A stretch of 63,978 nt of DNA, the filler included, from Octopus bimaculoides (taxonomy: Eukaryota): the NCBI RefSeq assembly GCF_001194135.2. It is 6 parts of 5 records of this genome, joined end to end, with 100 filler letters (N's around TTAATTAATTAA, not from the genome) between each part and the next. Parts side by side here need not be neighbours in the genome. Positions count along the whole stretch, not along the records: positions 14,300 to 19,504 come from NC_068994.1; 5 more parts are not named here. One strand, 5' to 3'. Below the pieces are notes generated by a model that was given only the letters and a program-made list of their open reading frames with translations, was not told the origin of the DNA and searched no databases. Numbering within the stretch: the stretch's first letter is position 1; each line of letters starts with the position of its first letter. The position numbers were made by a program, and so were the translations under genes. Of the stretch, positions 14,300-19,923 are shown piece after piece.

Positions 14300-14672
14300 A
14301 TACACACATATATGAGCAGGGATAGAGAATTTCACATCTTCATTTGATGATTACTCCATACAGAACCGACGATTGTTTCTATCGTACCAATATATATTAA
14401 TATAGTGAAAGGTATTAATTGCCAATCAATCCAATATATCTGAAATCTGTGCGAACACTTTTATCAAGCAAACCTATAACAGTCTGAATTTAAAGCGAAC
14501 TGGTATAATTTATTTCTTTATTGCTCACAGGACGCTAAACATAGAGGGGACAAAGAAGGACAGACAAAGGGCTTAAGTCGATTATATCGACCCCAGTGCG
14601 TAACTGGTACTTATTTAAACGACCCCGAAAGGATGAAAGGCAAAATATGTTTACTGTATCATTAATACTTAC

Positions 14673-14705
14673 TTTTTCTGGGGTGATAAGGTTGCAACTA
14701 TCATC
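14673..14705 (-). CDS. Candidate 33-nt micro-exon A of an unidentified gene
   Basis: ttttctctattgcag|GATGATAGTTGCAACCTTATCACCCCAGAAAAA|gtaagtat; phase 0 reads DDSCNLITPEK, phase 2 reads MIVATLSPQK; phase 1 has TGA. Confidence 0.62.
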
Positions 14706-15169
14706 CTGCAATAGAGAAAATAAGATAGTAAGATTGATAAAGAATTTAGTACATGTAAATTCGTAAACTATTAAGTATATGTAACGTTGCATCTGTCCAC
14801 TGTATCTTGGGTCATCCCGTAAATAATGCGGGTTTTTCAATTGCCTCTTAAAATTCTTAGGTTGCTTGATTGTTATAATGGTCTTATTCATACCAAGTTT
14901 GCTGCCGAGGTTCAGGTAGCCACCTTTGCTCTTCATTTCACTATTTCTATTAATTAGAGACATTTTTCCTTGTTGTTCACTTTATTTACACTGCTTTTTC
15001 TATTATCAATAAAGATTGTCTTACTATTCATCCTAATGACGCATGCCATAATGTTTTATTTTTATCGTTATGGTGATGGATATCATTATTCATGTTCCAG
15101 TTCATATGCATCTTTTATTCTTAATCTCGTCTTCATGCATATGATAATTTTTCTCCTTTTAACCAGTTC

Positions 15170-15760
15170 CAGTTAAAGCTGAATTGTAGTATTTAACGTT
15201 TTGCTTAGATATGTTTTCATTAGCTGAAAATATAGAGATTCTAAAGGAGACGCTTCCAATTATAGAATTTGTAATTGCTTCGGATGGTTAGAATTTCTAC
15301 TCACATATCTGAAGTTCTCATTTGGTTTGTGATACTGATTAAAAAGGCCCGTGTTACAATCCAAGGTAAAATCTAGAAAATTTACATATATACATGCATT
15401 CTCCAGGAAGGTAGATAGTCCTAAGGCCTTAAAAAATTCAAAGTGTTTTTTCTACACCTTTCTCAGTTAACCTTACTTCACATATAAACAGCAAATAAAC
15501 TGCCATCCGTTTATAATCTCTTCATTAGTTCGGGATATTGCCTATTTAAGTACTGAAATATATGAACGTCTACTAAATCAGTAATTTGTGCTGGACCCCT
15601 TTGTGATATGAAAGTTGTTCGGTCTGCCGTCTTTTGTCCATTATTTACACTCAAATTAGTTATAAGCTTCGTACCTGCTAAAATAATATTTACCCCTTTC
15701 TAAATAAATTGGAGTTGTTCATCACAAAGATGAGCACCTTATTTAGTAAAATAGGGTTTA
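15170..15760 (-). mobile_element. Penelope-like element RT remnant
   Basis: VNFLDFTLDCNTGLFNQYHKPNENFRYVSRNSNHPK matches the PLE RT motif NFLD.T....G....Y.KPN....Y....SNHP. Confidence 0.75.
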
Positions 15761-16093
15761 TGGAAAGATAATAATTAAATATATCAATTTGGATAAACTT
15801 AGTATTTTATGTATGTATGTATGTATGAATGCATGTATGTATGTATATGTGTGTGCGTGCACAAGTACTGGAATAAGTAAAAGAATAAAGTCAAAGAATA
15901 TACGCGTACTTACATACAGATACACATATATAAATATGTGTGTGCGTGTGTGTGTGTGTTTCTATGTGTATGTGTCTATGCGTGTTTGTGTGTGAGCGTG
16001 TGTGTTTTCTGTGTGTGATATTCCCAGTAAACTCACAGTCATGAAACTTTGTCATGTCTTGTAAAATATGTTTACTGTATCATTAATACTTAC

Positions 16094-16126
16094 TTTTGGG
16101 GGGCACGAAGATTTGCAACCATCACC
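16094..16126 (-). CDS. Candidate 33-nt micro-exon B of an unidentified gene
   Basis: ttttctctattgcag|GGTGATGGTTGCAAATCTTCGTGCCCCCCAAAA|gtaagtat; phase 0 GDGCKSSCPPK, phase 2 VMVANLRAPQ. Confidence 0.62.
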
Positions 16127-16615
16127 CTGCAATAGAGAAAATAAGACAGTAAGATTGATAAAGAATTTAGTACATGTAAATTCGTAAATTATTAAGTATA
16201 TGTAATGTTGCATCTGTCCGCTATGTCTTGGGTCATCCCGTAAATAATGCGGGTTTTTCAATTGCATGAACTAAAAGTCGGAGAAATTTGTCCAGATTCC
16301 GTTTAAAGGTCATGGGATCCTTTATGTCTTTGATCTGTTTTGGGATAAACAATGATAAACAGGGCTGTTCTTGTTGAGGAAAAGAAGTTGTTGCAACAAT
16401 ACCAACAATACTAGCAGCAGCAGCAGCAGAAGCAGCAGCAGCAATAGTATCAACAACAACAGCAATTCTTAGAACAACACTAGCAGAGTCATATTTTTAT
16501 AGTTCTTGGATGCCTTAAACCTCTTCTCATCCAACTTTGCCTACAAGATAACATGAACAATAATAAGATGGATTCATATGTCCCTAAAGTATTTTCTTTT
16601 CTTGCTTACATCAGG

Positions 16616-16948
16616 AGTGGAGGCACAATGGCCCAGGGGTTAGGGCAGCGGACTCGTGGTCATAGGATCGTGGTTTCGATACCCATGTGAGTGTTTATTG
16701 AGCGAAAACACCTAAAAGCTCCACCAGGCTCCGGCATGGGATGGTGGCGAACCCTGCTGTACTCTTTCACCACAACTTTCTCTCACTCTTTCTTCCTGTT
16801 TCTGTTGTGCCTGTATTTTAAAGGGACCAGCTTTATCACACTGTGTCACGCTGAACATCCCCGAGAACTACGTTAAGGGTACACGTGTCTGTGGAGTGCT
16901 CAGCCACTTGCACGTTAATTTCACGAGCAGGCTGGAACCCTCGACAAA
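16616..16948 (+). mobile_element. tRNA-derived SINE of a second family, 11-bp TSD
   Basis: CTTACATCAGG at 16605-16615 and 16949-16959; tRNA-like head; absent from the paralogous site near 18890. Confidence 0.85.
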
Positions 16949-17642
16949 CTTACATCAGGTCTCTACACCGCCATGTAAAGGCAGGTCACCAATTGGTTAA
17001 TGTGTTGGACTCACGAAGTGGGTTCGATTCATACACCGGGAGGCGTGCTACGATATCGCATTGTTCAAGTCTACTCAGCCAAAGGTTTTCAGGCCGAATT
17101 TGATGTTTTTTATGCCTCCTTCTTTCAGAAACAGTTTAATGTATTATTGGACAACCAAGGGCTTTGGAGATCATAAAGATAAAAGCTGTAGTTGAGAAAC
17201 AGTTAGCTGACATAGAGAACTAGAAGCCATCTAAATATTGTCTAGAGCTACGAAAAAATTAACTAGTGTATTAATGGTTATTTAGGTCCCATATGGAACA
17301 TTATATCATGTAACTTCTCTCATGCAAGTACTCCACTTTCTAGGGTTTAATACTATAATCATTACACTTTACTATATACCCATGTATATAGGCTTTAGTA
17401 AAAATGTGAGAGAAACCAACCTCTGGGTTCGGGTCATTCACATTATTATCATTCCTATTACTATATGTTTTTTTTTTGTTATTACTACTACTATTATTAT
17501 CATCTTTACCAGCATTACTATCATTAATTTCATTATCAATATTATTATTATCCCTCTTAAAATTCTTAGGTTACTTGGTTGTTATAACGGTCTTATTCAT
17601 ACCAAGATTGCTTCCGAGGTTCACGTACATGCACGTACACAT

Positions 17643-17689
<47 letters not shown>

Positions 17690-17854
17690 AGTGTGTGTGT
17701 GTGTGTGTGTGTGTACCTGTATGTGTATGCACGTAAGTGTGCATGTGTGTGTATGTGTGTGTGTTTGTGTGTGTGCATGTGTGAGAGCGTGTATGTGTGC
17801 GTGTGTGTGTGCGCGCGTGTGTGCGCGCGTGTGTGCGTGTGTGTGTGAGCCTGT

Positions 17855-18024
17855 GTGTAGTTGTGTGGTAAGTAGCTTGCTTATCAACCACATGCTTATG
17901 AACCACATGGTTCAGGGTTCAGTCCCACTGCGTGGCACTTTGGGCAAGTGTCTTCTACTATAGCCTTGGGCCGACCAGAGCCTTGTGAGTGGATCTGGTA
18001 GACGGAAACTGAAAGAAGCCCGTC

Positions 18025-18061
<37 letters not shown>

Positions 18062-18143
18062 NNNNNNNNNNNNNNNNNNNNNNNNNNNNNNNNNNNNNNN
18101 NNNNNNNNNNNNNNNNNNNNNNNNNNNNNNNNNNNNNNNNNNN

Positions 18144-18183
<40 letters not shown>

Positions 18184-18357
18184 TTTGTGTGTCTGTGTTT
18201 GTCCCCCAACATCGCTTGACAACCGATGCTGGTAAAAAGGGACCGATAGAATAAGTACTAGGCTTCCAAAGAATAAGTCCTGTGGTCGATTTGCTCGACT
18301 AAAAGCGGTGCTCCAGCATGGCCACAGTAAAATGACTGAAATAAGTAAAAGAGTAAA
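17855..18357 (+). mobile_element. tRNA-derived SINE of a third family (internal TA/TG microsatellite)
   Basis: gtggtaag..ggttcagtcccactgcgtggcac head, ..actgaaataagtaaaagagt tail; sister copies at about 9195, 10600-10950 (-), 33620-33960, 37808, 38460-38745, 42165-42470 (-), 52888-53322 and 61460. Confidence 0.85.
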
Positions 18358-18420
18358 ACTCACAGTCATTAAATTTTGTAAAATATGTTTGTAAAATGCT
18401 TACTGTATCATTATACTTAC

Positions 18421-18453
18421 TTCTGTTGAGAATAAATATTTGCAATCGTCACT
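18421..18453 (-). CDS. Candidate 33-nt micro-exon C of an unidentified gene
   Basis: ttttctctattgcag|AGTGACGATTGCAAATATTTATTCTCAACAGAA|gtaagtat; phase 0 SDDCKYLFSTE, phase 2 VTIANIYSQQ. Confidence 0.62.
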
Positions 18454-19204
18454 CTGCAATAGAGAAAATAAGACAGTAAGATTGATAAAGAATTTAGTAC
18501 ATGTAAATTCGTAAATTATTAAGTATATGTAAATGTTGCATCTGTCCGCTATGTCTTGGGTCATCCTGTAAATAATGCGGGTTTTTCAATTGCATGTACT
18601 AAAAGTCGGAGAAATTTGTCCAGATTCCGTTTAAAGGTGATGGGATCCTTTACCTCTTTGATCTGTTTTGGGATAAACAATGATAAACAGGGCTGTTCTT
18701 GTTGAGGAAAAGAAGTTGTTGCAACAATACCAACAATACCAGTAGCAATTCTTAGAACAACACTAGTAGAGTCATATTTTTATAGTTCTTGAATGCCTTA
18801 AACTTTTTCTCATTCAACTTTGTCTACAAGATAACATGAACAATAATAATAAGATGAGTTTTTATGTCCCAAAAGTATTTTCTTTTCTTGCTCACGTCAG
18901 GTCTCTACACTGCCATGTAAAGTTAGGTCACCAAGTGGTTAATGTGTTAGACCCACGAAATGGGCTCGATTCCTGTACCGGGCGGCGTGCTGAGTCCACC
19001 GGCCGGTGTGCTTCGATGTCGCATTGTTCAAGTCTACTCAGCCAAAGGATTTCAGGTTGAATTTGGTGATTTCTTTATGCCTCCTTTTTTCAGAAACAGT
19101 TTGATGTATTATTGAACAGTCAAGGGCGTTGGTGAGCATAAAAATTAAAGTTGTAGTTGAGAATCAGTTAGTTGACATGGAGAACTAGAAGCCATCTGAA
19201 TATT

Positions 19205-19490
19205 GGAAAATAATTACCGGAAACATGATGGTTCGAGCCGGGTAATAAAATGCCACCATGACTGCAGAACACTACTCTGTGAACACAGTAAAAGCTGTAA
19301 GACATGACATGGACAGCCGCAGACTACGAAGCCGTGACTAACAGCAAGATTAACAGAAGGCGTTCTGACTGCGACCGCAGGCCAGGCTTTACCCTACATC
19401 TTTGAACAGGACCTTAGGCTCAGTTCAGACGGCTATGTGAAGCTGCTGGGGACTGGCCACATCCTGATTAGAAAACGACGGCCATATATA
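19205..19490 (+). mobile_element. Tc1/mariner-superfamily transposase N-terminal fragment
   Basis: Fragments VNTVKAVR and DYEAVTNSKINRRRSDC resemble the DNA-binding region of Tc1/mariner transposases (recalled similarity, not searched). Confidence 0.4.
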
Positions 19491-19923
19491 TGTATGTATA
19501 TATANNNNNNNNNNNNNNNNNNNNNNNNNNNNNNNNNNNNNNNNNNNNTTAATTAATTAANNNNNNNNNNNNNNNNNNNNNNNNNNNNNNNNNNNNNNNN
19601 NNNNTATATATATATATATATGTATGTATGTAAAGACAACATACTTGCACACAGTTTCCATGAACCAAATTCCCTGACAAGCCATTGTTTGTCTCAGGGC
19701 CATATTAGAAAATACTTGTCCATAGAACTGGGCAGTGAGACTTTACCTGAAACCATGTAGTTGCAAAGTCAGCTTCTTAACCACACAGTCATGCTACTAT
19801 TTCAAAGCTGAGACATCAAACTTTATGCAATTTGCTACAAAACGAAACAGAGATATAAGAAATTTTCTACAGTTAAATATTCAACAAAATTTATCAAAAT
19901 ATAAATAAAAAATGTTTTCTTAC

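Follow-up and report, generated by a model that had tools for sequence, protein, structure and literature searches.

A tandem array of 33-nt exons more diverged than their flanking introns in an orphan gene model of Octopus bimaculoides

The array and its gene model

We analysed a window of 63,978 nucleotides (nt) of Octopus bimaculoides DNA (RefSeq assembly GCF_001194135.2), in which six parts from five records are joined end to end, and describe here the part at positions 14300-19504 (record NC_068994.1), where three very short exons, E1 to E3, lie in tandem on the minus strand. The array consists of tandemly duplicated cassette exons, the bodies of which are diverging faster than the introns around them, in an annotated but uncharacterised orphan gene model, UniProt A0A0L8FVT6. 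All coordinates are positions in the whole window. The part is AT-rich (GC fraction 0.37) and crowded with microsatellites and with repeats that resemble short interspersed nuclear elements (SINEs).

Three like units are present on the minus strand, each composed of ttttctctattgcag, exactly 33 nt and gtaagtat, with tcttattttctctattgcag directly before and gtaagtat directly after the exon. Scanning the part for the splice frame TTTTCTCTATTGCAG-N33-GTAAGTAT returns exactly three matches, with no mismatches, and none is obtained in 200 dinucleotide-preserving shuffles; the same pattern has no match in JGI metagenome contigs. Neither a blastn search of the unit core against the part nor a sensitive self-comparison finds a fourth copy within it. 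E1 (18421-18453), which comes first in the transcript, reads VTIANIYSQQ(K) in frame +1 and SDDCKYLFSTE in frame 0; E2 (16094-16126) reads VMVANLRAPQ(K) and GDGCKSSCPPK, and E3 (14673-14705) reads MIVATLSPQK(K) and DDSCNLITPEK, respectively. These two frames are open in all three exons, and the third is closed by TGA in each of them.

When the joined exons were compared in both open frames with a collection of 5.8 billion proteins, a single candidate was returned, A0A0L8FVT6 (A0A0L8FVT6_OCTBM), an uncharacterised protein of 46 residues from O. bimaculoides. The match is 100% identical over 32 residues, half of the query, and spans two exon-exon junctions. In the sequence of this protein, MKIFARIYT-VTIANIYSQQK-VMVANLRAPQK-MIVATLSPQK-KFAMC, residues 10-41 are exactly the translation of E1+E2+E3 from the second base, the three exons corresponding to residues 10-20, 21-31 and 32-41, and each junction lysine codon takes AA from the end of one exon and its G from the start of the exon that follows. 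The model splices E1, E2 and E3 consecutively on the minus strand at exactly the AG/GT sites observed here, and its outer coding exons (MKIFARIY.. and ..KFAMC) lie outside the part. Hence E1-E3 are already present in a gene model, and they are read there in frame +1 rather than in the xDxC frame (frame 0). Ab initio predictors rarely call five-exon genes of 46 residues with 33-nt exons, and for this reason we infer that the model rests on transcripts. The annotation uses frame +1, and either of the two open frames, or neither, may be the translated one. We found no paper that mentions A0A0L8FVT6, nor any on micro-exon genes in cephalopods.

The consecutive splicing of the model bears on the idea, raised in an earlier note on this DNA, that the exons are mutually exclusive in the manner of Dscam. 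In such a cluster one of the three would be chosen for each transcript through competing RNA pairing. Dscam arrays share with the octopus array their tandem homologous exons of equal length and phase, and each octopus exon has a conserved intronic element upstream. The only transcript model, however, carries E1, E2 and E3 in series (it is silent on cassette skipping and leaves room for other isoforms), and 33 nt is a multiple of three, so that joint inclusion stays in frame. Moreover, complements of the conserved flank do not exceed 10-11 nt, which is chance level, within the part, which extends beyond the array by about 1 kb on the upstream side and 0.4 kb on the downstream side, and no docking/selector pairing is seen in the sequence at hand. 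Mutual exclusion is accordingly held to be very improbable.

Divergence of the exons and introns

The exons differ from one another at 11 of 33 positions (E1-E2), 13 of 33 (E2-E3) and 16 of 33 (E1-E3), or 33-48%. Eighteen of the 33 columns are variable, mostly at nt 15-31, and four of them hold three different bases, while the 5' half retains GAYnnTTGCAA in the three exons. Far fewer differences are found in the intron directly upstream, namely 7/293 (E1-E2), 6/139 (E2-E3) and 7/139 (E1-E3), or 2-5%. The tracts compared are the proximal upstream introns of E1 (18454-18747; 97.6% identical to the E2 copy), E2 (16127-16419, of which the first 139 nt can be set against the E3 copy) and E3 (14706-14844, where 139 nt are kept). 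Fisher's test of exon against adjacent intron gives p = 4e-8, 6e-7 and 1e-8 for E1-E2, E2-E3 and E1-E3, respectively. The edges are sharp: the 139 nt before the AG contain seven variable columns and one single-base indel, against 18 variable columns in the 33 nt of the exon. Downstream, the E2 donor gtaagtat and its conserved intron (16026-16093) are identical over the first 31 nt to the E3 copy (14642-14672), with 0/31 differences, and the E1 donor gtaagta with its short conserved intron (18366-18420) carries a 1-nt deletion and a small internal duplication relative to E2.

In their 3' halves, E1 and E3 show no similarity beyond that of shuffled sequences, 793 of 2000 shuffles doing as well, and a relationship between E1 and E2 can still be made out there (only 5 of 2000 shuffles as alike). 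Despite this near-randomised 3' half, the length is 33 nt in E1, E2 and E3. For E1-E2 and E1-E3 the top-scoring alignments contain no gaps; that of E2-E3 gains slightly in score, though not significantly, if one compensated pair of 1-nt indels is allowed. Alignment tests gave no support for a micro-inversion or a frame-shifted alignment behind the variable half.

Units 1 and 2 share enough sequence for three rate classes to be compared. The distal intron differs at 49 of 450 positions (10.9%), the proximal intron at 7 of 293 (2.4%) and the exon at 11 of 33 (33%), with p = 6.6e-6 for proximal against distal intron and p = 9.6e-4 for exon against distal intron. As a near-neutral yardstick we use the distal intron of unit 1 (18748-19205), which by eye is old and repeat-derived and is ~89% identical to its counterpart in unit 2 (16420-17240); relative to it the exon is ~3x more diverged and the proximal intron ~4x less. 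For E2-E3, the exon (13/33) likewise exceeds the intronic segment X described below (6/75; p = 2e-4). The observation that the exon bodies have diverged far beyond near-identical introns is real and statistically solid.

Most of what the earlier note had read from the sequence by eye is borne out by these results. Its three minus-strand units of acceptor, 33 nt and donor are all confirmed, down to the boundaries used by A0A0L8FVT6, and its counts of 11, 13 and 16 exon differences agree with ours once its copies A, B and C are taken in plus-strand order (its A being E3). The differences do cluster at nt 15-31, exon length is constant as it had said, the introns are indeed far less diverged than the exons, and the peptides it gave for two open frames, with TGA blocking the third, are correct. 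Of those two frames, its phase 2 (our frame +1) is the annotated one, and its xDxC frame is not used by the model. Its caution that exons this short are easily missed by annotation does not apply here, since they are present in A0A0L8FVT6.

Origin of the three units

To judge from the alignments, the locus is made up of three segmental duplicates in tandem, 1.4-2.3 kb in length, and each of them holds a single internal exon of 33 nt on the minus strand. Its history is one of tandem segmental duplication with later deletions and insertions, and not of three independent insertions of a mobile element, because units 1 and 2 align over ~850 nt that include an old repeat-like stretch (recognised by eye) in the same place. 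The long shared flanks also argue against a transposon whose dispersed copies vary in the middle. At the same position in units 1 and 2 (18891-19205 and 16949-17240) there is repeat-like sequence, 82-88% identical between them, that includes a GGTTCGATTC-like motif. In unit 3, 139 nt of upstream intron are joined straight to segment X, which in unit 2 lies 1.29 kb further up, in the E1-to-E2 intron (17553-17627); it is 92% identical to 14844-14918, adjoining the E3 proximal intron, and would mark both the unit boundary and the deletion in unit 3. When 14844/14845 is compared with 16265/16266 and 17552/17553, the ~1.29 kb missing from unit 3 can be read as a deletion there or as insertions elsewhere. 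The distal intron of unit 2 holds, at 16609-16948, a GC-rich (0.51) SINE-like insertion of 340 nt that is found in this unit only and has an 11-nt target-site duplication, CTTACATCAGG. Box A/B motifs like those of tRNA can be made out in it by eye, and neither ARAGORN nor Rfam calls a tRNA. The insertion is younger than the duplication that gave units 1 and 2.

At 16266-16419 units 1 and 2 show 4 differences in 150 nt, yet this tract is deleted in unit 3. Because it is absent from a unit whose exon stays in the model, the identity of the proximal introns is not all due to splicing constraint, and a gene-conversion tract between units 1 and 2, ending at the exon, is probably the simpler reading of their low divergence. 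If the flanks were converted up to the exon, the exon body would either have been shielded from conversion or have diverged since then at many times the rate of the flank. A (GCA)n-type microsatellite at 16405-16460 in unit 2, absent from unit 1 (a 45-nt alignment gap), sits where the identity of the two units falls from ~98% to ~89% and may be the end of such a tract. In addition, the upstream flank (139 nt) groups E1 with E2 (1 difference, against 6-7), whereas the downstream flank (31 nt) groups E2 with E3, from which E1 is set apart by one indel and one substitution. That the affinity changes from one side of the exon to the other may point to breakpoints of recombination or conversion there, with too few sites for significance.

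Introns that are better conserved than their exons might also be expected if the locus were the host gene for an intron-encoded small nucleolar RNA (snoRNA) or microRNA (miRNA), the conserved ~140-300 nt upstream being the product and the short exons disposable, as in UHG, GAS5 and the SNORD115/116 and C19MC arrays. The combination of conserved introns and poor exons is a signature of snoRNA host genes, reportedly described by Tycowski et al. in 1996, and the tandem units, short exons and lack of a convincing open reading frame (ORF) fit the same picture; UHG, SNORD115/116 and C19MC also combine tandem units and a poor ORF with introns more conserved than the short exons. Unlike UHG, SNORD115/116 and C19MC, however, the conserved octopus intron has no box C/D, hairpin or Rfam signal. 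Rfam finds no family there even at E <= 1. A D box (CUGA) is missing from both strands of the conserved flanks in all units, and with it any canonical C/D pair, and the flanks fold no better than shuffles (z = +0.75 and -0.12). Furthermore, unit 3 has lost half of the tract over which units 1 and 2 are conserved. We therefore give a small-RNA host gene hardly any weight.

Splice signals

All three units follow the order uacuaaa...cuuacugucuuauuuucucuauUGCag, exon, GUAAGUAU. In each 3' splice region, including that within 18454-18747 upstream of E1, a UACUAAA-like branch point lies ~40 nt upstream of the AG and is accompanied by a long pyrimidine tract, UCUCU, and UGC directly before the AG, and the donor GUAAGUAU is in each unit fully complementary to U1. 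Micro-exons that depend on SRRM3/4 have been described as having a strong 5' splice site and a bipartite UCUC..UGC enhancer, with the branch point and the pyrimidine tract at some distance from the AG (bioRxiv 10.1101/2024.09.17.613571). The same set of features, known as the SRRM3/4 (eMIC) type, is present at E1-E3, where the three splice regions are duplicates and the architecture counts as one observation. Flanks of this type explain how an exon of 33 nt can be spliced when its own body contributes little. The octopus exons resemble the neural micro-exons of this class in being short, with a strong 5' splice site, a recessed branch point, UCUC..UGC and a conserved flanking intron. The SRRM3/4 micro-exons are themselves highly conserved, however, and lie in conserved neuronal genes, whereas the exon body is the most variable part of the octopus array and the host is an orphan model; at 33 nt, the octopus exons also exceed the strict micro-exon limit of <= 27 nt.

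Selection and coding status

We rank first, at about even odds, a functional reading that is centred on the exons, because a neutral island of 19 nt alone would not become 3-8x more diverged than its repeat-like neighbour. The micro-exon would be recognised through its intronic flanks, that is, the distant UACUAAA-like branch point, the pyrimidine tract, UCUCU..UGC and the GUAAGUAU donor, and the exon body would be little needed for splicing beyond its conserved 5' half. The likeness of the flanks would be due in part to their recent origin and in part to conversion between units 1 and 2, and the exon bodies would have escaped homogenisation and diverged faster than their surroundings. The cause may be selection for differing exon contents or, alternatively, heteroduplex rejection at an already diverged island. 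Under selection, the product would be a small, fast-evolving peptide of 11-residue modules, resembling those of the micro-exon genes (MEGs) of schistosomes.

A number of observations weigh against this functional reading. Transcripts behind A0A0L8FVT6 are presumed; the sample is three exons only; and the distal-intron yardstick (11%) could have been lowered by older conversion, in which case 'faster than neutral' would be unproven. Nei-Gojobori estimates of the ratio of replacement to silent differences per site (pN/pS) in the annotated frame +1 are 0.94, 0.88 and 0.44, none above 1, with 6-7 silent sites. Silent divergence (pS) is 0.22-0.88 over both frames, far above that of the intron, and silent sites have diverged as much as replacement sites, which is not what simple positive selection on a young duplicate predicts. 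With regard to the product, HMMER against 1.84 billion representatives returns only A0A0L8FVT6 itself and a spurious bacterial match, Pfam has no match to A0A0L8FVT6 or to the frame-0 concatenate, and AlphaFold2 gives a single low-confidence helix at a predicted local distance difference test score (pLDDT) of 63. No signal-peptide-like hydrophobic core is evident at the N-terminus on the Kyte-Doolittle scale, no dedicated predictor having been applied, and no other protein in the 5.8-billion collection shares a 5-residue word with either open frame. The coding status of the 46-residue ORF is, in consequence, weak.

Some details of these tests deserve mention. The bacterial match, to an SprB-repeat-like adhesin, was rejected as a relative of A0A0L8FVT6 because it arises via low-complexity repeats of the 'VTITDAN' type. 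The protein has seven basic and no acidic residues; the highest mean Kyte-Doolittle value over 11 residues at its N-terminus is 1.54, with Arg at position 6, and the 5' end of the model may be incomplete. Since no 5-residue words are shared, the search found no second annotation and no other octopus protein with these exons.

In frame 0, pN/pS is 0.65, 2.0 and 2.0, again with only 6-7 silent sites, and young exons under positive selection fit best with this frame. The earlier note had taken the contrast between exons and introns as a mark of diversifying selection. Such selection on a peptide is not demonstrated by the range of pN/pS, 0.65-2.0 in frame 0 and 0.44-0.94 in frame +1, and at the level of the peptide it stays unproven, dN/dS being uninformative where 33 nt offer little power. 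The conservation of the introns is partly better explained by gene conversion than by constraint. Nor was any link found to the venom, immune, gamete-recognition or adhesion gene that had been proposed; the orphan product has neither a Pfam match nor an evident signal peptide. Three readings suit the data about equally well or badly, namely positive selection on young exons, old exons among homogenised introns, and non-coding exons.

If the exons are non-coding, they would belong to a long non-coding RNA (lncRNA) or to the untranslated region (UTR) of a longer mRNA, and the 46-residue ORF would be a longest-ORF artefact; what counts in each exon would be its splice signals and its 5' half only, and the 3' half would drift and then block the conversion tracts that homogenise the flanks. 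A tiny orphan ORF with neither signal peptide, domain nor homologue, and with no words shared with any other protein in the collection, is in keeping with this, as are the equal silent and replacement divergence in both frames and the evidence of conversion in the flank. Drift alone, on the other hand, does not yield a 19-nt island 3-8x more diverged than the repeat-like intron beside it. Moreover, a length of exactly 33 nt and two open frames kept in three copies would be mildly unexpected of unconstrained sequence, and only mildly so: we estimate the chance of no stops within the variable parts at ~0.07 and that of no net indel at ~0.1. Taken together, we regard a non-coding array as a tentative second choice, and on balance doubtful.

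The exons could instead be old and the introns only young in appearance. The exons would then be ancient paralogues in frame +1 under weak purifying selection, the introns being homogenised by concerted evolution and conversions that overwrite an exon being removed by selection. The replacements in frame +1 are conservative (V/M, I/V, I/L), with an invariant A and junction K, and the 18 variable columns fall 8, 6 and 4 times on codon positions 3, 1 and 2, which is the order of ordinary constrained coding sequence (3 > 1 > 2) but is not significant with so few sites. Near-saturated pS alongside pN/pS of 0.44-0.94 and the difference in divergence between proximal and distal intron also accord with old exons. 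Nevertheless, units 1 and 2 are shared whole, with the old repeat-like segment in place, as expected of segmental duplication and not of patchwise conversion, and in every unit conversion would need to end only a few bases away from each of the two splice sites. A known parallel is exon 2 of major histocompatibility complex (MHC) genes, a diverged exon within flanks homogenised by recombination or conversion, as reportedly described by Cereb in 1997 and Bergstrom in 1998; for that exon and its introns, too, it has been proposed that selection removes conversions across the exon. The MHC sequences, however, are alleles of a single locus and subject to balancing selection, whereas the octopus exons are tandem paralogues in one transcript. 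We judge old exons to be an unlikely explanation.

Neighbouring sequence

The intron that separates E1 from E2 contains an assembly gap (18062-18143), which interrupts a compound (TA)n/(TG)n microsatellite and is 277 nt away from the closest exon, with a (TA)n run on one side and a (TG)n run on the other; the same compound (TA)n(TG)n occurs without a gap at ~17645-17860. The gap is crossed by no reading frame, the units on either side share orientation, and in A0A0L8FVT6 E1, on the right side of the gap, is spliced to E2, on its left side, matching the order and orientation of the scaffold. It leaves only the length of the intron uncertain. The sequence at 17866-18365 resembles a single SINE-type element that has within it a (TA)n/(TG)n microsatellite enclosing the gap; by their likeness to abundant octopus repeats, its two halves may belong to one element. 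A further SINE-like fragment (14500-14641), sense to the transcript, adjoins the conserved downstream intron of E3, begins 31 nt downstream of the E3 donor, and stands in place of the downstream intron common to units 1 and 2.

Upstream of unit 1, positions 19206-19504 are richer in GC (0.47) and have no homology elsewhere within the part, and a Pfam scan of their translations gives no match. On the minus strand at 14535-14963, 16052-16267 and 18400-18564, frame 0 remains open for ~46 codons back into the conserved intron and past the donor, giving read-through ORFs of 142, 71 and 54 residues in an AT-rich region, the longest being longer than expected. A search of the protein collection with an alignment of these ORFs gave 40 candidates that share words with them, none of them scoring, and in unit 1 the frame is lost through a 1-nt indel; the ORFs are probably due to chance. 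Rfam 'miRNA' matches at 15805-15990 and 17616-17826 (mir-3149, mir-1277, mir-297 and others) are far below gathering scores and are artefacts of TA/TG microsatellites. ARAGORN finds no tRNA in the part.

Comparison with known systems and significance

Toxin genes offer one comparison. Accelerated exons amid conserved introns are said to have been found in them by Nakashima et al. in 1993 and 1995, Olivera et al. in 1999 and Conticello et al. in 2001. The conotoxins and crotaline phospholipases A2 (PLA2) share with the octopus exons that, among recent duplicates, exons outrun the adjacent introns. The excess in toxin genes is in replacement sites (dN/dS > 1), however, whereas in the octopus exons silent sites are equally diverged, and the annotated octopus frame has no cysteine framework, signal or pro-region.

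Schistosome MEGs offer another. Their coding regions consist mostly of very small symmetrical exons, their products are orphans, their loci are transposon-rich and recently duplicated, and they evolve fast (PMC4350168). All MEG products have a signal peptide and are secreted or membrane-anchored, and MEGs have been reported only from platyhelminths (PMC4350168). In A0A0L8FVT6 the three exons, each a multiple of three, make up 99 of the 141 coding nt (3 x 33), so that very small symmetrical exons account for most of what is coding, and the locus is also MEG-like in its orphan product, repeat-like insertions, recent duplication and fast exon divergence. It differs in that its product has no evident signal peptide and in that its three exons are paralogues of one another, and neither HMMER against the 1.84 billion representatives nor Pfam relates A0A0L8FVT6 by sequence to a MEG family. 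By analogy, the locus might be an octopus gene of the schistosome MEG build, in which 33-nt exons are kept different or driven apart by selection, introns are homogenised and the exons are included in varying combinations to give a family of variable 11-residue peptide modules, so that the MEG principle would have arisen independently outside the flatworms; we think this improbable.

If the exons are translated, the array would be a compact case, outside parasites and venomous snails, of exons outpacing their introns, with micro-exons that can be shuffled in frame, and it would suggest that cephalopods possess a class of small, fast-evolving peptides that has gone unrecognised. Should they be untranslated, it would be a clean natural case in which the splice signals of a micro-exon are kept while the exon body is free, and it would also show gene conversion stopping at a short diverged island.

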